Shown piece by piece: positions 30 to 17,084 of a stretch of DNA of 17,084 nucleotides. A program made the position numbers and the translations under genes. Origin of the DNA: Octopus sinensis (taxonomy: Eukaryota). Within the stretch, counting starts at the first letter, position 1. Each line of letters begins with the position of its first letter. The stretch is from contig NW_021824956.1 of the NCBI RefSeq assembly GCF_006345805.1, positions 1-17,084 of the forward strand, read 5' to 3'. Below the pieces are notes generated by a model, which was not told where the DNA came from, searched no databases, and was given only the letters and a program-made list of their open reading frames with translations.

Positions 30-87
30 TGTCCCATGGGTGATCAGACCCCCATGGGCAACCTGGCCTTTACGTGTTTCATGGCAC
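28..87. repeat. Right terminal inverted repeat of the preceding satellite element
   Basis: Direct copy of 16190-16251 (atgtc.catgggtgatcagacccccatgggca.cctggcctttacgtgtttc.atggca.c) with a few single-base losses. Confidence 0.85.
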
Positions 88-218
88 TTCTAGCAAATAT
101 TTACGACGAACGAACGAACAGATTTTATTGACTTAGCAACCGAAAGAGAAGAGTTATATGAAAAGGTTTTATTAAAATCGAGACACCGAAAGCCTCCTCC
201 TTGCTTCCTTTTCACTTC

Positions 219-2789
219 TCATGCCCTTTGCAATGAGCAGGACTTGCCGAATGTTTTGAGTTTGTTCGTCTAGCTCTCTGGGAGATCCTGATCAAGCCGT
301 AGCTTATACGCCAGTTTAATCGCAAAGCGCCTTGTTTTCTCCAGTTTGGTGATTATGCGATTTCTCTCGTCTGTAGGGTACCAACCTTCATGTCCATAGA
401 TAAGGACTGGTTCTACAGTCGCCTTATAGATGAAGATAAAGGTGTCTGGGGAGAGATGGAAGCGTATAAGGCTTCTCAGGATCCCGGAACATTTCCTTCT
501 TCTAGATTCCACGAACTTAAGGAACGATCCGTCAGCCCCGATCGTTACCCCAAGGTAGCGTAGGTCGTCAGAAATTCTTAGTCCCATTGTCTCCAGAAGT
601 GGTTCTCTTCCTTTCCGAGTTTTAGAAATCCACGTGATGGTGGACTTGTCTCGTGCTAAAGAGAGGGCTTTCTCCGTTGCCCAAGACTCAACCCTCGCTA
701 CATATTCCCTCAGCCTTTTCCAAGAGAGGTCCTTGGATCGCGACAGATCCGTAACCAATATGTCGTCCGCATAGATAATTAGTAGACTCTCCGGATTTTC
801 TGGTTTCGGGATGTCGGCAACGTATAAGTTGAAAAGTAGAGGGCTCAGGACCGACCCTTGAGGCACTCCCCTCCTTAGATTGATTGTATCCGAGGTCCGG
901 TTACCACATCTGATAAAAGACTTTCGCATGTGTAAGAAATTCTCTAGCCATTTGACAGTCCTTTGCCCCGGATGGATACTGATGATCCTTTCCAGGAGGC
1001 CTAGGTGCCAAACGCTGTCGAACGCCTTTGAAATGTCCAGACAAACAGCTGTCATCCCCATCTTGTGTGTAAGGGCCCTCGAGATTTGCGTTTCCAGTTG
1101 CAAAGCAGTTTCCACAGGACTTCCCACGTCGGAAACCCCATTGTTCTTTAGCCAGGTAACCTGACTCCTCCACGAGAATAGATAATCTGTTAAAGATTAT
1201 ACGTTCCATGATTCTTGATATGGAGCAGATGAGACTTATGGGTCGGAAATTTTCTGCACGGTCTTTAGGTTTCCCTGCCTTTGGAATCATTCGTACCACG
1301 GTTTTCTTCCATGCATTCGGGACGTATCCAGTCTCCCAACTGGCATTGAAAAGTATCGTTATTATCTTGACTAGGCTTATCGGGGCCTCTTTGAAGACTC
1401 GGATGGGTATGTAATCAAACCCGGTGCGTTGTCCTTGCATCTTTTAATTGCTAGTAGGGTTTCATCCAGGGTGATTGCGTGACAAAGTCGACCAGGGACA
1501 TTTTCGCAGAGGCTATTGCCCTCTTTTTATCGTCCATTATATCTGTCGGGACAAAACAGCTCGGGTCGACATCTTGAATTTTCGCCAGTTGTTGACGTAA
1601 AGCGTCAGGTACATCGTCTCGGTTGATGGCATAGCCATTTTCTGTGGTTAAATTGATTTCATCTCCTTTGCATTCCGTTCCTTTAGGCGATTATATGCCT
1701 TCCAGAAACTTGGGTGTCTTCGATTAAGCTTAGAACATTCCAATCTCCAAGCTGAGTCAATGTTTTCTTTAGACCTTTTGTCGATCCTCTTTTTAAGAGA
1801 GGAAATCATTGCTCGTAGGCGTGTGCAGTCTGTTGGGTCAAAACATCTGCGTAGCCTCTTCTGGTATCTTGCCTTTTCTTTCAGGAGACTCACTACTGTG
1901 TCGTCGAGTTCATGAGTCCCTCCACCAGAGTGTTTAATGAACTTTTTCCTGGAGAACTTCTCCAAAGAAGTGTTGATGAGATTCCTAACGAGCTGGTCCA
2001 GACTTTCAATTTGTTTTGTCGTGTGAACTGCTGCCCGATGTATGAGTGACTCTAGCGAGGTTGTCAGGAATAGGGACACAAGGGGCCAATTCGTTTGATT
2101 GGTATTGTATCCAATAAATACTTCATCTTGCAGAACTGAGCTTGCACGTAACACCATTGTTTGAGGAAGGTGATCGCTTCCGATATCAATTTCAATGCGT
2201 GGGCGGTCACAGAGGGGGGCTAAGCAGTCCGCCACGAGAAACACACCAAGTCGATCTTCTCCGTAACATGAGAAGTGATTCGTTTCGTCAGAGGACCAGA
2301 CCTCAAAACCGTGTCTCGCCGATAAGGTATGAAGTAACCGTCCGTCACTGTTTGTGATACGCATCCATATAGCGAGTTCTTTGCGTTTAGGTCTCCGACT
2401 AGAATCGACTTTCCATTTGCCTTGAAGAAACCTCCAACTAGGCCTGGGTAACTCTTGAGGTCCTTTGAGTACATCCCCCCAATAGTGATCCATCCCAGAG
2501 AAGTATGGAGCTCGAGAGACAGCATTTCGCATCGACTTTCTTCTATTCTCCTGTAGTTTCTTGTTTGAAGGTTTTCTTTATAGTAGATGCACGATCCGGT
2601 TCCCGCATTCGCGAACGGTTTCCAAGCAATACTCAATGACTTGTATCCTTTGATGCTGAAGGATTGGCTTTCCTTCAGTTTCGATTCATTGATAACAAGT
2701 ATATCCATGTCTACGGAGCCAATCATGTGGAGTAGCTACGTAGCCCGTCTCCGAAGAGATCGGGCGTGTGTGAGCGTCATAACGCTCAT
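219..2789 (-). CDS. LINE-A ORF2, apurinic-like endonuclease + reverse transcriptase (~855 codons, broken by several frameshifts in this sequence)
   Basis: APE motifs: ARSLRRR, VINESKL, LVGDLNAKN, IGSDHLP. RT motifs: WKKTVVRMIPKAGK, FRPISLICSISRIMERII, CLDISKAFDSVWH, GVPQGSVLSPLLFNLY, YADD, YLGVTI. The stop at 219-221 is inferred from the open frame in the second copy (16382). Confidence 0.93.
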
Positions 2790-2872
2790 ATCTTTCGTCT
2801 GATACTGGCGGCAGACCTCTCCTTTAAGGCGCCACCAGGAGGAGTCAACCCTCTCCCATCTTTTTGTCAGCG
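2786..2872 (-). pseudogene. C-terminal remnant of LINE-A ORF1 (gag-like)
   Basis: One frame reads ...ALKERSAASIRRKI*, resembling the LINE-B ORF1 end LLSERSSPAK*. Its TGA overlaps the ORF2 ATG (ATGA at 2786-2789). Confidence 0.6.
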
Positions 2873-3080
2873 ATATTTACTAAAAGGCCAACTAATATAA
2901 AGACAATGGAAGTTTTATTGTAAGTAAAACAGAGACTAAGTAAAAAGGTTGGACGAGGTTAAACGAGACGACTGCGAAGACAGTCGAGCTCTGCCGAGAT
3001 TCGTCCTAAGGGAATATATGAGCCGGTTTTTGAAGAGTCACTCTCTGATTGAATTTCAGACGCGATCCACGAAAAATCGG

Positions 3081-5644
3081 TCACCTGAGACCGCCGACGA
3101 AAGTTCGGATGGAATCAAGGATGACTTTCTCGATTAGTGGAGATTTCTCCTCTGCCCAGTTGGGTAGCGGGGCGCGTAGATCCAATCTGTACGCTAGCTT
3201 TAACGCATAGCGACGGATCTTCTCACATTTTTTCATATTTTTTCCGAATTGGTTTGAATAGTGCCACGCCTCCATCCCATACAAGAGACTTGGGAGAATC
3301 GTCGCGCGAAAGACAAACAGAAGTGTCGGGGGCCAAATGCATACCCCTCAGGAAGCGAAGGGCCGCACGCCTTTTCCTTTTTTGGGTGATGTGCAGTAAG
3401 TACTCCGAGTTAGAGTCTACCGTCAAGCCCAGATAGCGAATGTGGCTCGGGCGGGGAAGTCTTCTGAGAATCTCAGGCTCTTGCCTCGATTTGCGCCGTG
3501 AGTTAATTTCAGGTACGCCGACTTGTCCATAGCAATGGATAGTTGTTTACCCCGACACCAGGTCTCTATCATTCCGATGTAGCTGGAAGACGGTGCTCCG
3601 AGAGTGCGGGGGCTTTTTGAATATCCATAATGAGGACGTCATCAGCGTACAAGAGGAAAGTTGTCCGCGGATTGGGGAAGGAAGGGAAGCTGCTCATCAC
3701 AAGGTTGAACAGCAGCGGGCTGAGACTGGATCCCTGCGGACACCCCTTCGGAGATGTATATCTCTGGAGTGGAAGCCCGACTGGGACCAAAGAGATACGG
3801 TTAGAAAGAAGCAATTCAGCCAGAGAAATGCCTCTCTCGTTGGCTCACAACTGCGAACCCTGTCAATAGGTCTGGGTGGTACACGCTGTCGAATGCTTTA
3901 GAGATGTCAAGGCAGATGCAAGATAAAGTTTCGTTGAACTCCATTGCTTTCAAAGCCATCGATTGAGAATCAGAAAACAATCGGCGCAGCTGCGCCCGAG
4001 CGGAACCCCACTGCTGGGGCAGAAGCACGCATTTTCTGCTCAGCGAAGGAGTCGAAGCGTTTGGTCATAATTTTTTCCATAAGCCTCGAGATCGTTGTAT
4101 TAGACTGATGGGTCGATAGCTGCTGGCAAGGTAGCTGGTTTTGCAGGTTTCTTGATCATCCGGATTTCGGCGACTTTCCAGGCACTTGGAACGTGGCTCC
4201 AGCGAAGACTAGCCGAGAAGAGGCGTGCCAAAAACTCAGACAGTTCCGGAGGGCCTTCTTTGAACATTTTCATTGGTAGCATGTCATGCCCCGGTGCGTT
4301 GTCCCTCGCCGAGAGGATGGCCCAGGTCACCTCAGCGGCGGTGATTGGGTGATGATCAACAGATAGGGAGTCTGCTTGGTCTATAGGACTGGCATGTGAG
4401 TTTCCCCAGCGATCCTCATGGTCCGGCAGAGGACGGTCCAGGTGATCAGCAAATATGTTGGGGATTTCCTCCACCGACCGAGGCATTCCAGCTGAGTTCG
4501 ATAATTCTGGTGCCTGAGAGTTCACGAGATGATTAGAGAGTCTGTTGTAGGCTATCCAGAAGTTTGGGTTCCTGTGATTAAGACCAGAGCAGGCCTTCTT
4601 CCACATCCTCTCAAGATCTTTCTTTCTTGTGAGTTCAATTTTGTGGTTGAGCAGAGAGATTTCCGACCTTAGGGTACCTTGGTCCGTTGGGTCGGCACAG
4701 CGTTTTGAGCTTGTTTCGCAGGCGTTTCTTTTCGCCCAGAAGTTGGAGAAGTTTGGGGTTTTGATGTGTAATGCCCTTGCTAGTTGGGCGCACCCTCCTA
4801 GCGTGGGCTTCCAAGTAGAGTCGCATGAAGTCCGTCAATTCGGCGCCCGAGTTGTCGATGTCCGAGGTAGATTGATAGCTGCCTGGGCGTACGTTGTTGC
4901 GAAAGAAACGTTCAGAGCATAACGGTAGTGCGCCCAGTTGATGTTCGAAAGGGTGTATCGTGGTGGGCAACGGATTTGGGTGTCTACCGAGACGTGGACA
5001 CAGACCTGCATTGGCAGTGGTCGCTCCCAATATCGTCGAGTACTATTGTTCTCCCATAAGATTCGCGACTGATTGAGAGCTCAGTGCTACGCAAAGGTTG
5101 TCCCAGCCGAATGGGGAGCGGTGGTTCCGGGCTTTCGAGGTGCGGACACAGACGTCTAGCCTACCTGCCGCTCTTTCAAGTAACCGGCCGTCCCGATTGG
5201 TCACGCGACACCAAATGCCGTGTGTTTGGAGTTTAGATCACCGATGAGGAGGCAATGATTTGAGCTGACAAAAGAAGTCTTCGATAAGACCGATGCATGG
5301 AGCAAGGTTTTGCGATATATTCCGCCCACTTTTAACCAAAAGCGCTGGGTTTTAATCTCTAGCGAGATAAATTCGCATAGGTTCCGTTCGATAGTCTTGA
5401 GGTTACGTGTCTTGAGATTTTGCAGGTAGTAGATAGTCGTCCCAGTCCCAGGCGTAGAGTTATTTCTCCATTTCAGGTCAAGGGAGCAGTATCCTGGCAA
5501 TTCGAAGCATTGACCTTCTTTCAGCTTAGACTCGTTGACGACGATTAAGTCAGGATGGCCGCTGTTTACCATCTCAACGAAGTCGAGGTGCCGTCTCTTG
5601 ACAGATCGGGCATTCACAGCGATGATTTTTAGTGGCGTGGTCAT
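3081..5644 (-). CDS. LINE-B ORF2, endonuclease + reverse transcriptase (~855 codons, multiple frameshifts)
   Basis: MTTPLKIIAVNARSVKRR, VVNESKL, LIGDLNSKH, DDIGSDH, SAWKVAEIRMIKKPAKP, CLDISKAFDSVYH, PQGSSLSPLLFNLV, YADD and EKIRRYALKLAYRL occur in colinear order across the ORF fragments. Confidence 0.92.
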
Positions 5645-6514
5645 TTTGCTGGCGAGCTCCTCTCTGATAGGAGCTCTTCTAGCTTCTTGGGTTTGACTCC
5701 CAGTTTCAGCAGTGCGTCGACACAGCGTTGGTAAAATTCCAACAGAGCATCCTTGTTGTGAGAGTCTACCTTCGCCTGCGTTTTGGCCTGCTGAGTACCG
5801 TTCCTTATTGGGCTGACGGGCCTCGGTTTCACAGCCTCGGCGACAGGGGCCTGCATGCTCTGCGCACCAACCTCAACGACTTGCGTCGTCTGGGTATGGG
5901 CGTCCCGCCACACACGGGGTTATTAGCGGCCGTACTTTCCAGATAGGCGTGACCGGCTTAGCTTTTACCATTACCATGCGGGTTGGGTTAGGAGACCGAG
6001 GCATTGCTTCTGCGCGGGCGGCCCATTTAGCTGCTGTTGCAGCTTTGGCCGTCGGGCATCCACCATACGAAGCGAGGTGGCCGGGGCGGTCACAATTGAT
6101 ACAATGCCGACCGCAGGGCTCCACTAGACTTTGTTTGCTGCAGGGCATTCCCTTCGGTCGTGGTCCTTGCCGCAGTATAAGCACCGGGCTTTTTCTTGAC
6201 AGTTACGGGACAGGTGTCCGAATCTCTGACAATGGAAACATCGGACGACAGGAGGTCTGAACCATTCACAGGTGATAAGGCAGAAACCAGCTGTGATTCC
6301 GGTGCGGATCAAAGAAGTAGCTTCAGCTCGTGAGTCAAGCGTCAGCTTAGCAACTGGGATGTTGAGACCATCTCGCGTGAATCGCTCGAGAACGAACACC
6401 GACTGAGGGTTTCCTTCAGGTGCAGCTCTAGGTCCCGATTGGAGATCCATCGCGGAATCCCTTTAGGACTAGTGCTGACTTTTGCGGAGTAACTAAGGCA
6501 AGTTTATGGCCGCC
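5641..6514 (-). CDS. LINE-B ORF1, gag-like nucleic-acid-binding protein (N-terminus missing, frameshifted)
   Basis: Knuckles CFHCQRFGHLSRNC (CX2CX4HX4C), CLYCGKDHDRREC (CX2CX3HX4C) and CINCDRPGHLASYGGC (CX2CX4HX6C) at 6056-6240. Upstream LVLKG/IPRWISNRDLELHL segment is typical of Jockey/I/R1-type ORF1. Confidence 0.9.
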
Positions 6515-6522
6515 TATAAAGA

Positions 6523-7260
6523 AACGAACATTTTTTGAATTGAAATGTTATTTTCTATGTACAACTCGTCACTAGATTAAAAGGGGGAGAAGAGCAAACG
6601 AAACCAAGGAGACGAGAAACAAGTTTGTTTGCTGATTGGGTCATTCTAATGGGACACCAGATGTCCCTTCGATAAAATAACGACCCTTGCACCACTATTT
6701 ATTTAAGTGATGCAACAAGTTTTCAATGGATCGTACCGATCCCTCCAGCTCTGGGGTTAGTTTGGATTTTAAGTCCAAGCCATGTGCCAGTTTTAATGGC
6801 ATATCTCCGCGTTTTCTCCAAAAGATCAATATGTTTCTTTCCTTCGCAGCTTCCGAACCATCCTTGAGATCATAGATCAGGAAGGGTTCTATACACCAGA
6901 GTATACGTATAAGAACGTTTCCGGTTTCAGCTGGAATCGCATCAGAGCTTTCAACATTTGGGTAGCCTGTTCTTTCTCTTCCTTATATACATCTTGAATG
7001 AACCAGTTGCATCCACAACTATTCCGAGGTATTTAAGATCATCCACGGGTTTTATCGCTCCGGTGTTAATACAAACATCAGGTTTCCTTCTCCTTTTACC
7101 AATCCAGCAAACAGTGCTTTTTTCAAAAGATAAAGACAAGCCTTTATCCTGGCACCATTTGCCAATTTTTTCGATATGACTGTGGGTTTTCCACGATATT
7201 GACTTGCTCATAGAGAAATCCATAATTAAAATATCGAACAGAACTAATGATTGAACTTTA
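6523..7260 (-). mobile_element. LINE-C: short 3' fragment of a third related non-LTR family
   Basis: RT C-terminal homology, a 3' UTR, and an end (CAAAAAATGTTCGTT, sense) resembling the LINE-A end (CAATAAAATCTGTTCGTT). The 5' boundary is approximate (7250-7300). Confidence 0.8.
6695..7260 (-). pseudogene. LINE-C ORF2 RT C-terminal remnant
   Basis: SLVLF-DILIMDFSMSKSISWK, KGLSLSFEKS, LKYLGIVVD and LEKTRRYAIKLAHGLDL align with LINE-A DDILVTDLSRSKDLSWK, LRYLGVTIG and LEKTRRFAIKLAYKL. Frameshifted; stop at 6695-6697. Confidence 0.85.
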
Positions 7261-7437
7261 AATTTTTGAGAAAATGATGTTTTATATTTGAAACCTGCTT
7301 GCTTTAAAATTGTAAAATTATTTACAACATTAGCAAATTATAATGTGAATTATTTTTATTTTTGATAATATAAATTGCAACATTAGCAAATTATCATTTA
7401 CATCAAATTTTTCGCAAAGTTTGTAACAACGTTAACT

Positions 7438-7597
7438 CTAACCTTAACCCAAACCCTAACGTTGGCAAATGACAACATAAATATATTTCAAAATCTGAAT
7501 CCTAACTTAACCCAAACCCTAACGTTGGCAAATGACAACATAATAGATTCAAAATCTGAACCCTAACCTTAACCCACACCCTAACGTAACCCTAACT
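7438..7597. repeat. ~62-bp tandem repeat (2.5 copies) containing telomere-like CCCTAA/TAACCC words
   Basis: Unit ctaaccttaacccaaaccctaacgttggcaaatgacaacataa...ttcaaaatctgaa starts at 7438, 7502 and 7563. CCCTAA at 7454, 7517, 7561, 7579, 7590. The related word caacattagcaaattat occurs at 7325 and 7378. Confidence 0.85.
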
Positions 7598-7926
7598 CGA
7601 AATTAAATGATGTTTCTGCTGACGATTCTTAAGACATTTTGACAAAATTGGAAGCTTTTTGGGCCAACGGTGTTTGCTTCGAGCATTCATATCCTCCGGG
7701 AATATCCCGATTAACGTTTCCTTAATATGATTGTATTCGTTAATATTTCTGACGTAACCCTTAAACCCAGACATCACAAAGTGTGAGAGACCCGCTGTTA
7801 AAATTATAAACTTTGGGTAAGCCATTTTAAAAGATAATTCAAATGTAATTTTTAATTAGAATAATTGATCAATCTACACTCTTCCATATATAAATTGTTA
7901 TATTCAATATTTAATACCTTTTCTGC

Positions 7927-7989
7927 GTTTCCATAGAAACACGTAAAAGGACTGGCTGCCCATAGCGACATAGTCGCCCATGTGACATA
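7927..7989. repeat. Left terminal inverted repeat
   Basis: gtttccatagaaacacgtaaaaggactggctgcccatagcgacatagtcgcccatgtgacata aligns to the reverse complement of 16190-16251 at 49/63 columns; the inner 13 bp are identical. Confidence 0.85.
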
Positions 7990-10900
7990 TTATGAAATTA
8001 ATTACATAATCTCAAGTACTCCCATTTTCTCACATCTAGAGACCTTCCAAATTACATTATATATTATGAAATTAATTACATAATCTCAAGTACTCCCATG
8101 TTCTCACATCTAGAGACGCTCCCAAATTGTAAAATATATTACGCAATTCATTAAATAATCTCAAGTACCCTCATGTCTTCAAATCTATGGACATCTCTTA
8201 ATTGCATAATATATTACGCAATTTATTATATTATCTAGGGTACCCGAATGACCTAAAATCTAGGGACATCTCTTAATTGCATAATATATAACGCAATTAA
8301 TTACATAATCACAATTACACCCATTTTCTGACATCTAGAGACCTTCCAAATTAAATTACATATTTTGAAATTTTATTACATAAAATCAAGTACCCCCTGG
8401 TCTTCAAACCTATGGACATCTCTTAATTGCATAATATATTACGATATTAATTACATAATCTCAAGTACTTAAATGTTCTCACATCTTAAGACGCTCCCAA
8501 ATTGTAAAATATATTAAGCAATTCTTTAAATAATCTCAATTACCCCAATGTCTTCAAATCTAGGGACATGTCTTATTTGCATAATATATAACGCAATTAA
8601 TTACATAATCTCAATTACACCCATTTCCTAACATCTAGAGACCTTCCAAATTACATTATATATTATGAAATGAATTACATATACTCAAGTACTACCATGT
8701 TGTCACATGTTGAGACGCTCCGAAAATGTAAAATATGTTAGGCAATTCTTTAAATAAACTCAAGTACCCCAATGTCTTCAAATCTAGGGACATCTCTTAA
8801 TTGCATAATAAATAACGAAATTAATTACATAATCTCAATTACACTCATTTTCTCACATCTAGAGACCTTCCAAATTACATTATATATTATGAAATTAATT
8901 ACATAATCTCAAGTACTCCCATGTTCTCACATCTTGAGACGCTCCCAAATTGTAAAATATATTACGCAATTCTTTAAATAATCTCAAGTACCTCCTGGTC
9001 TTCAAATCTATGGACATCTCTTAATTGCATAATATATTACGCAATTAATTACATAATTTCAAGTACACCCATTTCCTAACATCTAGAGACCTTCCAAATT
9101 ACATTATATATTATGAAATGAATTACATATACTCAAGTACTACCATGTTGTCACATCTTGAGACGCTCACAAAATGTAAAATATATTACGTAATTCATTA
9201 AATAATCTCAAGGACCCCCATGTCTTCAAATCTAGGGACATCTCTTAATTGCATATTATATAACGCAATTAATTACATAATCTCAATTACACACATTTTC
9301 TCACATCTAGAGACCTTCCAAATTAAATTATATATTATGAAATTAATTACATAATCTCAAGTACCCCCTGGTCTTCAAATCTATGGACATCTCTTAATTG
9401 CATAATATATTACGCAATAATTACAACATAATTTCAAGTACACCCATTTCCTACATCTAGAGACCTTCCAATTACATTATATATTATGAAAATAATTACA
9501 TATACTCAAGTACTACCATGTTGTCATCGCTTAGACGCTCACAAAATGTAAAATATATTACGTAATTCATTAAATAATCTCAAGGACCCCCATGTCTTCA
9601 AATCTAGGGACATCTCTTAATTGCATAATATATTACGCAATTAATTACATAATTTCAAGTACACCCATTTCCTAACATCTAGAGACCTTCCAAATTACAT
9701 TATATATTATGAAATTAATTAAATAATCTCAAGTACCCCCATGTCTTCAAATCTAGGGACATCTCTTAATTGCATATTATATAACGCAATTAATTACATA
9801 ATCTCAATTACACACATTTTCTCACATCTAGAGACCTTCCAAATTAAATTATATATTATGAAATTAATTACATAATCTCAAGTACCCCCTGGTCTTCAAA
9901 TCTATGGACATTTCTTAATTGCATAATATATTACGCAATTAATTACATAATCTCAAGTACTCCCATGTTCTCACATCTTGAGACGCTCACAAATTGTAAA
10001 ATATATTACGTAATTCATTAAATAATCTCAAGGACCCCCATGTCTTTAAATCTAGGGACATCTCTTAATTGCATAATATATAACGCAATTAATTACATAA
10101 TCTCAATTACACCAATTTTTTCACATCTAGAGACCTTCCAAATTAAATTATATATTATGAAATTAATTAAATAATCTCAAGTACCCCCTTGTCTTCAAAT
10201 CTATGGACATCTCTTAATTGCATAATATATTACGCAATTAATTACATAATTTCAAGTACACAACACCATTCAACCCTTCCTAACATCTAGAGACCTTCCA
10301 AATTACATTATATATTATGAAAATAATTACATAAACTCAAGTACTCCCATGTTCTCACATCTTGAGATGCTCACAATTGTAAAATATATTAAGAAATTCT
10401 GTAAATAATCTCAAGTACCCCAATGTCTTCAAATCTAGGGACATGTCTTATTTGCATAATATATAACGCATTAATATACATAATCTCAATTAAACCCATT
10501 TCTCACATCTAGAGACCATACAAATTAAATTATAGATTATGAAATTAATTACATAAACTCAAGTACCCCCTGGTTTTCAAACCTATGGACATCTCTTAAT
10601 TGCATAATATATTACGATATTAATTACATAATCTCAAGTACTCAAATGTTCTCACATCTTGAGACGCTCCCAAATTGTAAAATATATTAAGCAATTCTTT
10701 AAATAATCTCAAGGACCCCCATGTCTTCTAATCTAGGGACATCTCTTAATTGCATAATATATAACGCAATTAATTACATAATCTCAATTACACCCACCAT
10801 TTTCTCTCACATCTAGAGACCATACAAATTAATTATAGATTATGAAATTAATTACATACATATCTCAAGTACTCTCATGTTCTCACATCTTGAGACGCTC

Positions 10901-13900
10901 TCAAATTGTAAAATATATTACGCAATTCTTTAAATAATCTCAAGTACCTCCTGGTCTTCAAATCTATGGACATCTCTTATTGCATAATATATTACGCAAT
11001 TAATTACATAATTTCAAGTACACCCATTTCCTAACATCTAGAGACCTTTCAAATTAAATTATATATTTTGAAATTAATTACATAAACTCAAGTACCCCCT
11101 GGTTCTTCAACCTATGGACATCTCTTAATGCATATATATTACGATATTAATTACATAATCAAGTACTCAAATGTTCTCACATCTTGAGACGCTCCCAAAT
11201 TGTAAAATATATTAAGGCATTCTTTAAATAATCTTAATTACCCCAATGTCTTCAAATCTAGGGACAAGTCTTATTTGCAAATATATAACGCAATTAATTA
11301 CATAATCCAATACACACACACCCATTCCTAACATCTAGAGACCTTCCAAATTACATTATATATTATGAAATTAATTACATAAACTCAAGTACTCAAAGTT
11401 TCTCACATCTTGAGACGCTCACAAATTTAAAATATATTACACAATTCATTAAATAATCTAAAGTACCCCAATGTCTTCCAATCTAGGGACATCTCTTAAT
11501 TGCATAATATATAACGCAATATATTACATAATCTCAAGTACACCCCTTTTCTCACATCTAGAGACTTTCCAAATTACATTATATATTATGAAATGAATTA
11601 CATAACTCAAGTACTCCCATGTTCTCACATCTTGAGACGCTCCGAAATTGTAAAATATGTTAGGCAATTCTTTAAATAACTCAAGTACCCCAATGTCTTC
11701 AAATCTAGGGACATCTCTTAATTGCATAATAAATAACGAAATTAATTACATAATCTCAATACACCCATTTTCTCACATCTAGAGACCTTCCAAATTAATA
11801 TATATTATGAATTAATTACATAATCTCAAGTACCCCCTGGTCTTCAAATCTATGGACATTTCTTATTGCATAATATATTACGCAATTAATTACATAATCT
11901 CAAGTACTCCCATGTTCTCACATCTTGAGACGCTCACAATTGTAAAATATATTACGTAATTCATTAAATAATCTCAAGGACCCCCATGTCTTTAATCTAG
12001 GGACATCTCTTAATTGCATAATATATAACGCAATTAATTACATAATCTCATTACACACCAATTTTTCACATCTAGAGACCTTCCAAATTAAATTATATAT
12101 TATGAAATTAATTAAATAATCTCAAGTACCCCCTTGTCTTCAAATCTATGGACATCTCTTAATTGCATAATATATTACGCAATTAATTACATAATTTCAA
12201 GTACACCCATTTCCTAACATCTAGAGACCTTCCAAATTACATTATATATTATGAAAATAATTACATAAACTCAAGTACTCCCATGTTCTCACATCTTGAG
12301 ATGCTCACAAATTGTAAAATATATTAAGAAATTCTTTAAATAATCTCAAGTACCCCAATGTCTTCAAATCTAGGGACATGTCTTATTTGCATAATATATA
12401 ACGCAATTAATTACATAATCTCAATTAAACCCATTTTCTCACATCTAGAGACCATACAAATTAAATTATAGATTATGAAATTAATTACATAAACTCAAGT
12501 ACCCCCTGGTTTTCAAACCTATGGACATCTCTTAATTGCATAATATATTACGATATTAATTACATAATCTCAAGTACTCAAATGTTCTCACATCTTGAGA
12601 CGCTCCCAAATTGTAAAATATATTAAGCAATTCTTTAAATAATCTCAAGGACCCCCATGTCTTCTAATCTAGGGACATCTCTTAATTGCATAATATATAA
12701 CGCAATTAATTACATAATCTCAATTACACCCATTTTCTCACATCTAGAGACCATACAAATTAAATTATAGATTATGAAATTAATTACATAATCTCAAGTA
12801 CTCTCATGTTCTCACATCTTGAGACGCTCTCAAATTGTAAAATATATTACGCAATTCTTTAAATAATCTCAAGTACCTCCTGGTCTTCAAATCTATGGAC
12901 ATCTCTTAATTGCATAATATATTACGCAATTAATTACATAATTTCAAGTACACCCATTTCCTAACATCTAGAGACCTTTCAAATTAAATTATATATTTTG
13001 AAATTAATTACATAAACTCAAGTACCCCCTGGTCTTCAAACCTATGGACATCTCTTAATTGCATAATATATTACGATATTAATTACATAATCTCAAGTAC
13101 TCAAATGTTCTCACATCTTGAGACGCTCCCAAATTGTAAAATATATTAAGCAATTCTTTAAATAATCTTAATTACCCCAATGTCTTCAAATCTAGGGACA
13201 AGTCTTATTTGCATAATATATAACGCAATTAATTACATAATCCCAATTACACCCATTTCCTAACATCTAGAGACCTTCCAAATTACATTATATATTATGA
13301 AATTAATTACATAAACTCAAGTACTCAAATGTTCTCACATCTTGAGACGCTCACAAATTTTAAAATATATTACACAATTCATTAAATAATCTAAAGTACC
13401 CCAATGTCTTCCAATCTAGGGACATCTCTTAATTGCATAATATATAACGCAATATATTACATAATCTCAAGTACACCCCTTTTCTCACATCTAGAGACTT
13501 TCCAAATTACATTATATATTATGAAATGAATTACATAAACTCAAGTACTCCCATGTTCTCACATCTTGAGACGCTCCGAAATTGTAAAATATGTTAGGCA
13601 ATTCTTTAAATAAACTCAAGTACCCCAATGTCTTCAAATCTAGGGACATCTCTTAATTGCATAATAAATAACGAAATTAATTACATAATCTCAATTACAC
13701 CCATTTTCTCACATCTAGAGACCTTCCAAATTACATTATATATTATGAAATTAATTACATAATCTCAAGTACTCCCATATTCTCACATCTTGAGACGCTC
13801 ACAAATTGTAAAATATATTACGCAATTCATTAAATAATCTCAAGGACCCCCATGTCTTCAAATCTAGGGACATCTCTTAATTGCATAATATATAACGCTA

Positions 13901-16192
13901 TTAATTACATAATCTCAATGACACCCATTTTCTCACATCTAGAGACCATACAAATTAAATTATAGATTATGAAATTAATTACATAATCTCAAGTACTCTC
14001 ATGTTCTCACATCTTGAGACGCTCCCATATTGTAAAATATATTAGGCAATTCTTTAAATAATCTCAAGTACCCCAATGTCTTCAAATCTAGGGACATGTC
14101 TTATTTGCATAATATATAACGCAATTAATTACATAATCTCAATTACACCCATTTTCTCATATCTAGAGACCTTCCAAATTAAATTATATATTTTGAAATT
14201 AATTACATAATCTCAAGTACCCCCTAGTCTTCAAACCTATGGACATCTCTTAATTGCATAATATATTACGATATTAATTACATAATCTTAAGTACTCAAA
14301 TGTTCTCACATCTTGAGACGCTCCCAAATTGTAATAAATAAACTCAAGTACCCCAATGTCTTCAAATCTAGGGACATCTCTTAATTGCATAATAAATAAC
14401 GAAATTAATTACATAATCTCAATTACACCCATTTTCTCACATCTAGAGACCTTCCAAATTACATTATATATTATGAAATTAATTACATAATCTCAAGTAC
14501 TCCCATATTCTCACATCTTGAGACGCTCACAAATTGTAAAATATATTACGCAATTCATTAAATAATCTCAAGTACCCCCATGTCTTAAAATCTAGGGACA
14601 TCTCTTAATTGCATAATATATTACGCAATTTATTATATTATCTAGGGTACCCGAATGACCTAAAATCTAAGGACCTCTCTTAATTGCATTATATATTACG
14701 CAATTTATTATATAATCTCAATTACTCCCATGTTCTCACATCTTGAGACGCTCACAAATTGTAAAATATATTACGTAATTCATTAAATAATCTCAAGGAC
14801 CCCCATGTCTTCAAATCTAGGGACATCTCTTAATTGCATAATATATAACGCAATTAATTACATAATCTCAATGACACCCATTTTCTCACATCTAGAGACC
14901 ATACAAATTAAATTATAGATTATGAAATTAATTACATAATCTCAAGTACTCTCATGTTCTCACATCTTGAGACGCTCCCAAATTGTAAAATATATTAGGC
15001 AATTCTTTAAATAATCTCAAGTACCCCAATGTCTTCAAATCTAGGGACATGTCTTATTTGCATAATATATAACGCAATTAATTACATAATCTCAATTACA
15101 CCCATTTTCTCATATCTAGAGACCTTCCAAATTAAATTATATATTTTGAAATTAATTACATAATCTCAAGTACCCCCTAGTCTTCAAATCTATGGACATC
15201 TCTTATTTTCATAATATATTACGCAATTAATTACATAATCTCAAGTACTCTCATGTTCTCACATCTTGAGACGCTCCCAAATTGTAAAATATATTAGGCA
15301 ATTATTTAAATAATCTCAAGTACCCCAATGTCTTCAAATCTAGGGACATCTCTTAATTGCATAATAAATAACGAAATTAATTACATAATCTTAATTACAC
15401 CCATTTTCTCACATCTAGAGACCTTCCAAATTTCATTATATATTATGAAATTAATTACATAATCTCAAGTACTCCCATGTTCTCACATCTTGAGACGCTC
15501 ACAAAATGTAAAATATATTACGTAATTCATTAAATAATCTCAAGGACCACCATGTCTTCAAATCTAGGGACATCTCTTAATTGCATAATATATAACGCAA
15601 TTAAATACATAATTTCAATTACACCCATTTTCTCACATCTAGAGACCTTCCAAATTAAATTATATATTTTGAAATTAATTACATAATCTCAAGTACCCCC
15701 TGGTTTTCAAACCTATGGACATCTCTTCATTGCATAATATATTACGATATTAATTACATAATCTCAAGTACTCCCATGTTCTCACATCTAGAGACCTTCC
15801 AAATTACATTATATATTATGAAATTAATTACATAATCTCAAGTACTCCGATTTTCTCACATCTAGAGACCTTCCAAATTACATTATATATTATGAAATTA
15901 ATTACATAATCTCAAGTACTCCCATGTTCTCACATCTAGAGACGCTCCCAAATTGTAAAATATATTACGCAATTCATTAAATAATCTCAAGTACCCCCAT
16001 GTCTTCAAATCTATGGACATCTCTTAATTGCATAATATATTACGCAATTTATTATATTATCTAGGGTACCCGAATGACCTAAAATCTAAGGACCTCTCTT
16101 AATTGCATAATATATAACGCAATTAATTACATTATCTCAATTACACCCATTTTCTCACATCTAGAGACCTTCCAAATTAAATTATATATTAT
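7987..16192. repeat. AT-rich satellite, ~110 monomers of 74-75 bp with higher-order organisation
   Basis: Manual count: ~35 type A (ctagagaccttccaaatta, 74 bp), ~29 type B (cttgagacgctc.caaattgtaaaa, 75 bp), ~43 type C (tcttcaaatcta[g/t]ggacatctctt, 75 bp), 3 type D (ctagggtacccgaatgacctaaaat at 8235, 14642, 16061). Confidence 0.98.
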
Positions 16193-16251
16193 GTCACATG
16201 GGTGATCAGACCCCCATGGGCAACCTGGCCTTTACGTGTTTCCATGGCAAC
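16190..16251. repeat. Right terminal inverted repeat
   Basis: tatgtcacatgggtgatcagacccccatgggcaacctggcctttacgtgtttccatggcaac; inverse of 7927-7989 and direct copy of 28-87. Confidence 0.85.
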
Positions 16252-16269
16252 TACATAGCAAATATTTAC

Positions 16270-17084
16270 GAACGAACGAACAGATTTTATTGACTTAGCA
16301 ACCGAAAGAGAAGAGTTATATGAAAAGGTTTTATTAAAATCGAGACACCGAAAGCCTCCTCCTTGCTTTCCTTTTCACTTCTCATGCCCTTTGCAATGAG
16401 CAGAGGACTTGCCGAATGTTTTGAGTTTGTTCGTCTAGCTCTCTGAGGAGATCCTGATCAAGCCGTAGCTTATACGCCAGTTTAATCGCAAAGCGCCTTG
16501 TTTTCTCCAGTTTGGTGATTATGCGATTTCTCTCGTCTGTAGGGTACCAACCTTCATGTCCGTAGATAAGGACTGGTTCTACACTCGCCTTATAGATGAA
16601 GAGAAAGGTGTCTGGGGAGAGATGGAAGCGTATAAGGCTTCTCAGGATCCCGGAACATTTCCTTCTTCTAGATTCCACGAACTTAAGGAACGATCCGTCA
16701 GTCCCGATCGTTCTCCCAAGGTAGCGTAGGTCGTCAGAAATTCTTAGTCCCATTGTCTCCAGAAGTGGTTCTCTTCTTTCCGAGTTTTAGAAATCCACGT
16801 GATGGTGGACTTGTCTCGTGCTATAGAGAGGGCTTTCTCCCCAGCCCAAGACTCAACCCTCGCTACATATTCCCTCAGCCTTTTCCAAGAGAGGTCCTTA
16901 GATCGCGACAGATCCGTAACAATATGTCGTCCGCATAGATAATTAGTAGACTCTCCGGATTTACTGGTTTCGGGATGTCGGCGACGTATAAGTTGAAAAG
17001 TAGAGGGCTCAGGACCGACCCTTGAGGCACTCCCCTCCTTAGATTGATTGTATCCGAGGTCCGGTTACCACATCTGATAAAAGA
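16270..17084 (-). mobile_element. Second copy of LINE-A (3' end; runs off the window)
   Basis: Colinear with 105-924, ~97-98% identical by eye. Same (GTTC)3 tail, same flanking ATATTTAC (16262-16269). Confidence 0.95.
16382..17084 (-). CDS. LINE-A copy 2 ORF2, RT C-terminal part (partial, frameshifted)
   Basis: Homologous to 219-924, including GVPQGSVLSPLLFNLY and YADD. Ends RLDQDLLRELDEQTQNIRQVLCSLQRA*. Confidence 0.9.

Follow-up and report, generated by a model that had tools for sequence, protein, structure and literature searches.

How could three different retrotransposon families have come to lie in a single orientation within 23 bp of one another, beside one inverted repeat? This question is raised by a contig of Octopus sinensis (NW_021824956.1), of which we analyzed a stretch of 17,084 bp, hereafter called the window. 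Its left part contains three long interspersed nuclear elements (LINEs), all on the minus strand, which we name LINE-A (105-2872, 2,768 bp), LINE-B (2904-6514, 3,611 bp) and LINE-C (6523 to about 7260, a 5'-truncated remnant of ~0.74 kb whose 5' limit is approximate). They stand next to a terminal inverted repeat (TIR) and are surrounded by a satellite with a 75-bp monomer. An initial annotation of the window had reported three co-oriented LINE families with their 3' junctions close to an inverted repeat, and the protein domains, the sequence identities and the target duplications described below bear this out, all three junctions being inside 23 bp. The overall reading that we favor, and that we consider reasonably probable, is that the satellite is interrupted by a TIR-bounded block, that the LINE cluster lies inside this block and that a second LINE-A junction in the right part of the window is a copy of the first one. 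The 23-bp stretch is likely a local integration hot spot.

The insertion sites of LINE-A and LINE-B can be read from exact 8-bp direct repeats. Within the window, ATATTTAC is found only at 97-104, on the 3'-tail side of LINE-A, at 2873-2880, on its 5' side, and at 16262-16269, at the second LINE-A junction. Likewise, TATAAAGA is found only at 2896-2903, where it adjoins the 3' end of LINE-B, and at 6515-6522, on the 5' side of LINE-B, where it abuts the tail of LINE-C. When 105-2872 and 2904-6514 are removed with one copy of each duplication, the empty site reads ...GTTTCATGG-CACTTCTAGCAA-ATATTTAC-TAAAAGGCCAACTAA-TATAAAGA-AACGAACATTTTTT. In this site, CACTTCTAGCAA is a 12-bp spacer (85-96) between the inner edge of the left inverted-repeat arm and the LINE-A duplication, and TAAAAGGCCAACTAA corresponds to 15 bp of original target (2881-2895) separating the LINE-A and LINE-B sites. 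The two duplications and the empty site had been proposed in the initial annotation; both repeats proved to be exact and the empty site could be reproduced, but the coordinates first assigned were a few bases off. In the coordinates of the empty site, the 3' junctions are located 20 bp (LINE-A) and 43 bp (LINE-B and LINE-C) from the inner edge of the arm. By our estimate, the chance that an 8-mer recurs no more than a few hundred bases away from where the 5' end is expected is about 0.5-2% per element.

No convincing target duplication was observed for LINE-C in 7240-7450. The candidate AACTAAT (2890 and 7242) was discarded since 7242-7248 lies inside the LINE-C reverse transcriptase (RT) homology, where the ...QSLVLFDILIMD region is aligned to ...ESLLIIYADDILV of LINE-A. 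A chimera of LINE-B and LINE-C generated by template switching is ruled out by the fact that TATAAAGA brackets LINE-B alone.

These junctions suggest a simple scenario under the model of target-primed reverse transcription (TPRT). The plus strand would have supplied the primer, because it passes from the flank straight into the complement of each 3' tail. We propose that three related and distinct LINE families, of the type that combines an apurinic/apyrimidinic-like endonuclease (APE) with an RT, integrated by TPRT 73-96 bp in from the left end of the block, all in one orientation. LINE-B and LINE-C would have been primed from the same plus-strand nick, after ...AATATAAAGA, and LINE-A from a nick 23 bp nearer to the TIR, after ...AATATTTAC, that is after position 104. 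In the case of LINE-A and LINE-B, a second nick 8 bp upstream could have produced the 8-bp duplications. The fact that LINE-B and LINE-C share one nick bond is a hint of a determined site rather than of random insertion.

One could assume, on the other hand, that there is no hot spot at all and that the three LINEs form a chance nest in the sole insertion-tolerant, non-homogenized DNA within the satellite, noticed through selection for oddities. Satellites indeed purge insertions through turnover, and recent exchange has been heavy in the present array. Transposable elements are commonly found nested in satellite islands, as illustrated by the retroelement islands in Drosophila centromeres (PMC6516634), and the target is AT-rich, a preference of many APE endonucleases. 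However, we estimate the chance of three co-oriented insertions within 23 bp at about 5e-6 over the non-LINE core of the block plus the satellite, and still at about 6e-4 within the ~0.82-kb core, for a window that was itself selected for oddity. Two families at the same bond would amount to about 1/1600. Moreover, the body of LINE-C or LINE-B, once present, offered a far larger target than 23 bp, yet it was not hit. A chance nest appears to us quite unlikely.

The protein-coding content of the three elements was compared on the minus strand. The RT domain (PF00078, RVT_1) was detected in LINE-A (E=1.6e-25) and in LINE-B (E=5.2e-10). The APE of LINE-A, stitched across one frameshift, reaches 30.1 bits on PF14529 for a cut-off of 27.4; that of LINE-B, with 19.6 bits, is under this cut-off and gives a weak Exo_endo_phos match, and it carries the NESKL, GDLN and SDH motifs. 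LINE-B, which is read in three frames and is collinear with LINE-A, is apparently full length despite its many frameshifts: a 64-nt 5' untranslated region (UTR) precedes the ATG of the first open reading frame (ORF1), and the APE and RT follow. Its ORF1 carries a CCHC zinc knuckle (zf-CCHC), three Cys/His knuckles being visible by reading, and its 3' end is ...AATAAAACTTCCATTG, also given as ...CTTCCATTG. LINE-A comprises the APE and the RT, with several frameshifts, and ends with the tail TG(TTCG)3TC. It is devoid of ORF1, as it maps onto LINE-B from about LINE-B position 800, and is either a 5'-truncated copy or a member of a single-ORF family. Its ORF2 ends right behind the RT thumb, with about 165 nt left up to the 3' end.

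LINE-C was delineated with tblastn, tblastx, frame reading and its tail. Positions 6945-7259 match the RT thumb region of database LINEs (tblastn) and, in a collinear manner, that of LINE-A (tblastx). The element holds the RT thumb, the end of ORF2 and the 3' UTR and, being truncated, has no APE. Its 3' end would be given by the tail TGTTCGTT, which is the same motif as the TG(TTCG)n tail of LINE-A. At the amino-acid level, LINE-A is 41-48% identical to LINE-B and about 30-35% identical to LINE-C, nucleotide similarity being almost absent. Judged from these sequences, LINE-A, LINE-B and LINE-C are three distinct families of one broader APE/RT group. The distribution of the TG(TTCG)n 3' motif (105-120, 6523-6530 and 16270-16282) does not follow these identities: it is common to LINE-A and LINE-C, the pair with about 30-35% protein identity, and is missing from LINE-B, which is nearer to LINE-A in protein.

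As read from degraded copies, the architecture of these LINEs looks Jockey/CR1-like: ORF1 has CCHC knuckles, ORF2 is short and lacks both RNase H and a C-terminal Cys-His motif, and the (TTCG)n tail resembles a microsatellite. The closest proteins to the LINE-A RT and to the stitched LINE-B RT are only 31-37% identical and come from ENA assemblies; no close protein relative of either RT was found among 5.8 billion clusters. In the PDB, the LINE-A endonuclease had no match and the LINE-A RT matched R2 and group II RTs only. The contig contexts of two distant RT relatives provided no clade information.

Where do the three LINEs sit with respect to the TIRs? They had been placed just outside an element made of TIRs and satellite. 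This placement was not supported by our analysis and is probably inverted, as the TIRs would bound a block of non-satellite DNA with the LINEs inside it. The inverted-repeat arms are 53-55 bp long, imperfect and roughly 75% identical, and their alignment scores are far above those of shuffled sequences. Arm R1 (TCCCATGGG...GTTTCATGG, 32-84), which aligns to arm L with a score of 31 for a shuffle maximum of 16, would be the left TIR of this block, named block E, and arm L (CCATAGAAACACG...CCCATGTGAC, 7932-7986; score of 41 for a shuffle maximum of 15) its right TIR. A third arm, R2 (16194-16247), starts the next copy of block E. The block (32-7986) is 7.96 kb long, of which the LINEs contribute 7.1 kb; the remaining ~0.82 kb is non-coding and includes an AT-rich, non-LINE core at 7261-7931.

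On both sides, block E is bordered by the 75-bp satellite. Positions 1-31 are the end of a preceding array, aligning with 16162-16193, and the array on the right (7987-16193) extends over 8,207 bp with higher-order periods of 149 and 224 bp. The satellite phase runs unbroken across the 7.96-kb block, and the 8-bp direct repeat ATATTATG is found at both block edges. Indeed, the array 7987-16193 opens (7987-7994) and closes (16186-16193) with ATATTATG, and a degenerate copy of this junction repeat is observed at 23-31, in monomer phase. When the left flank ending ...AAATTATATATTATG is joined to the right flank opening ATATTATGAAATTAATTAC, with one ATATTATG kept, the result is an ordinary monomer, and its higher-order type is the correct one. 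In the same way, the satellite left of arm R2, which ends ...CCAAATTAAATTATATATTATG, and the satellite right of arm L, which starts ATATTATGAAATTAATTACATAATC, yield through a single-ATATTATG join a normal monomer whose type is correct within the 224-bp period.

The opposite arrangement would be that the satellite is the interior of a TIR-bounded (foldback- or Tetris-like) element at 7932-16247, with the LINEs in its external flank. The inverted arms do face the satellite on both sides, TIR elements containing internal tandem repeats exist, and the near-identity of the 381 bp at either end of the array could be read as a sub-terminal structure. However, no direct repeat flanks the unit 7932-16247 (arm L, satellite and arm R), its two sides being GCGTTT/CCATAG... 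and ...CCATGG/CAACTAC. Furthermore, the spacer, the duplication and LINE-A, which would be outside the arm, are conserved between both copies, and this would be unexpected for independent transposon flanks. Finally, the satellite keeps its phase across the other block, where an 8-bp repeat is present. A satellite enclosed by the TIRs is in our view rather unlikely. The continuity of the satellite phase together with the ATATTATG repeat, the lack of a direct repeat at the alternative unit and the conserved LINE side of arm R altogether argue that block 32-7986 is the insert. The better reading is that this block would consist of the LINEs and of a ~0.82-kb non-autonomous TIR element, inserted in one satellite monomer with duplication of an 8-bp target, and that the LINEs sit inside the TIR element, its left TIR having its inner edge 20-43 bp away from them.

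Several observations nevertheless speak against the reading that we favor. In a tandem of the type satellite-block-satellite-block, a block inside the satellite and a satellite inside the TIRs are circular permutations of each other, and it is by the 8-bp repeat and the phase that we chose between them; with a period of 224 bp, we estimate the chance of this repeat plus phase continuity at about 4-6%. The terminal 381-bp segments of the array (7987-8367 and 15813-16193; five monomers plus 8 bp), which flank the block, are 97.6% identical without any gap, the next-best match in the array being 93.9% and the others 88% or lower. This flanking duplication is atypical for a cut-and-paste transposon. 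Possible origins are a long duplication of the target, a direct duplication in tandem at the junction of which the element lies, or the mosaic of duplications that makes up the array. Three insertions in 23 bp, two of them at one bond, exceed the clustering of a neutral model and leave room for true targeting. Lastly, the 5' end of the second LINE-A copy, the only discriminating feature, is beyond the window, which leaves room for an independent insertion at the same site.

A parallel can be drawn between block E and hAT- or P-like miniature inverted-repeat transposable elements, which, like it, combine imperfect TIRs with short tandem repeats in their interior, lack a transposase and are flanked by a direct repeat of 8 bp of target. 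The block differs from them in that it is additionally flanked by the 381-bp duplication and in that no further copy of it turned up in the collections searched. To our knowledge, its termini (TCACATGGG...) do not match any canonical hAT end.

The core of the block contains repeats of its own. Two 53-bp direct repeats are present at 7313-7410; they carry TAGCAAAT..., TATTTAC and TAATATAAA, short motifs that recur where the LINEs inserted (TAGCAAATATTTAC...TAATATAAAGA). This target stretch might represent one more copy of the 53-bp repeat, a third and diverged one; the two visible copies are unoccupied. Farther on, about 170 bp beyond the 5' end of LINE-C and still inside the TIR element, 7434-7605 consists of 2.5 copies of a 63-bp repeat, each with telomere-like CCCTAA/AACCCTAA motifs (TTAGGG on the minus strand). 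No LINE junction was found within these CCCTAA-like repeats. A minus-strand ORF of 77 amino acids at 7592-7825, in the non-LINE core, has no Pfam match.

The second LINE-A junction deserves particular attention, as it could be taken for a repeated hit of the same site. That LINE-A recurs beside the next TIR, as initially noted, is real: arm R2 is followed by a 14-bp spacer (16248-16261), by ATATTTAC at 16262-16269 and by the 3' part of a second, minus-strand LINE-A copy (16270-17084) with the tail TG(TTCG)2TTC, cut by the window end. However, this recurrence is not independent. Positions 1-920 and 16162-17084 are 98% identical, with 17 substitutions and 12 short indels at a lag of 16,162-16,164 bp, and this repeat spans the satellite end, the TIR, the 12-14-bp spacer, the duplication, the tail and 815 bp of LINE-A. 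The LINE-A tails of the two copies differ by one ACG. Because the whole context is repeated at such an identity, the second junction is a copy and not an independent hit. A comparison of divergence was of no help as a test of independence, substitutions in the flank (3.1%) and in LINE-A (1.6%) showing no significant difference.

The composite and 8.2 kb of satellite are repeated at a lag of ~16.16 kb, either because unequal exchange duplicated them within the array or because the contig ends overlap. If the 17,084 bases are the complete contig, the end repeat might be due to terminal redundancy in the assembly of a tandem or circular repeat and not to two physical copies. Many of the differences between the copies are 1-bp indels typical of a noisy consensus.

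The array 7987-16193 is itself a mosaic of segmental duplications of 95-99% identity, with lags of 953 bp, ~1.93 kb (two 1.8-kb copies), 4.6-4.9 kb and 7.8 kb. Since the satellite is full of such duplications, kb-scale unequal exchange of similar age is evident in the array. At the lag of ~1.93 kb, a satellite duplication of ~1.8 kb relates 9787-11587 to 11737-13537 with 94-99% identity, and at the lag of 953 bp one of more than 300 bp relates 13837-14137 to 14790-15090 with 98-99% identity. Satellite positions 10,090-11,300 display many 1-bp deletions relative to their twin, in a manner that resembles long-read consensus noise. No LINE sequence was found by tblastn in the 8.2-kb AT-rich satellite, and a satellite 16-mer had no match in the full texts of papers.

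What could then make this site preferred? A possible explanation is that the lineage of LINE-A, LINE-B and LINE-C recognizes a site beside the TIR, through the sequence specificity of its endonuclease or through a position relative to something bound to the TIR, a situation to be compared with Tx1L in Tx1D. Supporting this idea, three families lie in 23 bp in a single orientation, LINE-B and LINE-C share an identical nick bond, both target duplications are 8 bp long and start in an AATAT-type motif, and the neighboring 8.2-kb AT-rich satellite is free of LINEs. Site-specific APE LINEs are known, and one of them is aimed at a DNA transposon (PMC1950540, PMC4640811). On the other hand, only one independent locus is available, the second LINE-A junction being part of the 98% repeat, and the sequences at the two nick bonds differ (TAC^TAA versus AGA^AAC or AGA^?). 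Similar motifs located 300-500 bp away in the same element, TAGCAAATTATCATTTAC at 7384 and TAATATAAA at 7366, are unoccupied. There is also no LINE remnant at the mirror position inside the other TIR, arm L: a local alignment had suggested a mirrored LINE 3' remnant at 7860-7930, but the 3' ends of LINE-A, LINE-B and LINE-C align to 7262-7931 no better than shuffled sequences. Moreover, the known target-specific APE LINEs belong to the Tx1 and R1 clades (PMC4640811), whereas the ORF2 of LINE-A looks, by reading, more like Jockey/CR1. We hold the recognition of this site by the LINE lineage to be rather unlikely.

A more specific version of this explanation would be that a Jockey/CR1-like lineage of at least three families (30-48% identity) evolved position-specific integration beside one TIR of a small DNA transposon residing in a satellite, two of the families cutting the same bond and a third one 23 bp away. 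It would parallel Tx1L/Tx1D with several families instead of one, and would fall outside Tx1 and R1, the two clades for which site specificity of APE LINEs is known; we regard it as unlikely. An RNA gene was not found as a target, Rfam and transfer RNA scans of the window being empty. Neither a 28-mer of the TIR nor a 22-mer of the LINE-A 3' UTR had an exact match in JGI metagenome contigs, and the 22-mer had none in IMG/VR.

Comparison with known systems helps to situate the locus. Among APE LINEs, site specificity is found mainly in two clades, Tx1 and R1, and transposons are among the sequences targeted (PMC4640811). According to PMC1950540 (and Garrett et al. 1989, cited there), Tx1L and Tx2L of Xenopus laevis are APE-type LINEs at a defined site in Tx1D and Tx2D, TIR DNA elements with internal tandem repeats, and the composite can be mistaken for one unit. 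Tx1L/Tx1D is the closest functional precedent. However, the specificity of Tx1L has been proven via many copies and endonuclease assays, whereas we dispose of one locus; Tx1L belongs to the Tx1/L1 group, whereas LINE-A, LINE-B and LINE-C look Jockey/CR1-like; and the site described here is common to three families.

R1-clade elements, such as R1 in the 28S ribosomal DNA and TRAS/SART in telomeric repeats, resemble the present LINEs by their APE and RT, their ORF1 with CCHC knuckles, their precise junctions, their fixed orientation and their multicopy target (PMC4640811, PMC1919474). In our case, the target is no RNA gene, the junctions are outside the CCCTAA-like repeats at 7434-7605 and the arrangement is known from one locus. 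An array of telomere-specific LINEs (TRAS/SART; HeT-A/TART) was likewise rejected, the junctions being in unique AT-rich sequence with 8-bp duplications. Another resemblance is with the G2/Jockey-3 islands of Drosophila centromeres, in which a non-satellite island containing nested Jockey-type LINEs has satellite on its sides and is amplified together with it (PMC6516634). In these islands, however, the enrichment is regional or at the level of chromatin, with no shared nick bond.

As the evidence stands, this locus represents a well-known type of case, in which transposable elements nested within a satellite island were carried along during amplification of the array, and it illustrates that a recurrence inside a repeat array constitutes no independent evidence of targeting. 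If targeting were true, site specificity would have arisen independently for a third time among APE-type LINEs. Nature would then have supplied a set of diverged endonucleases aimed at one short DNA segment, useful for understanding retargeting, and a clear case of a transposon acting as a safe harbor for others inside satellite DNA.

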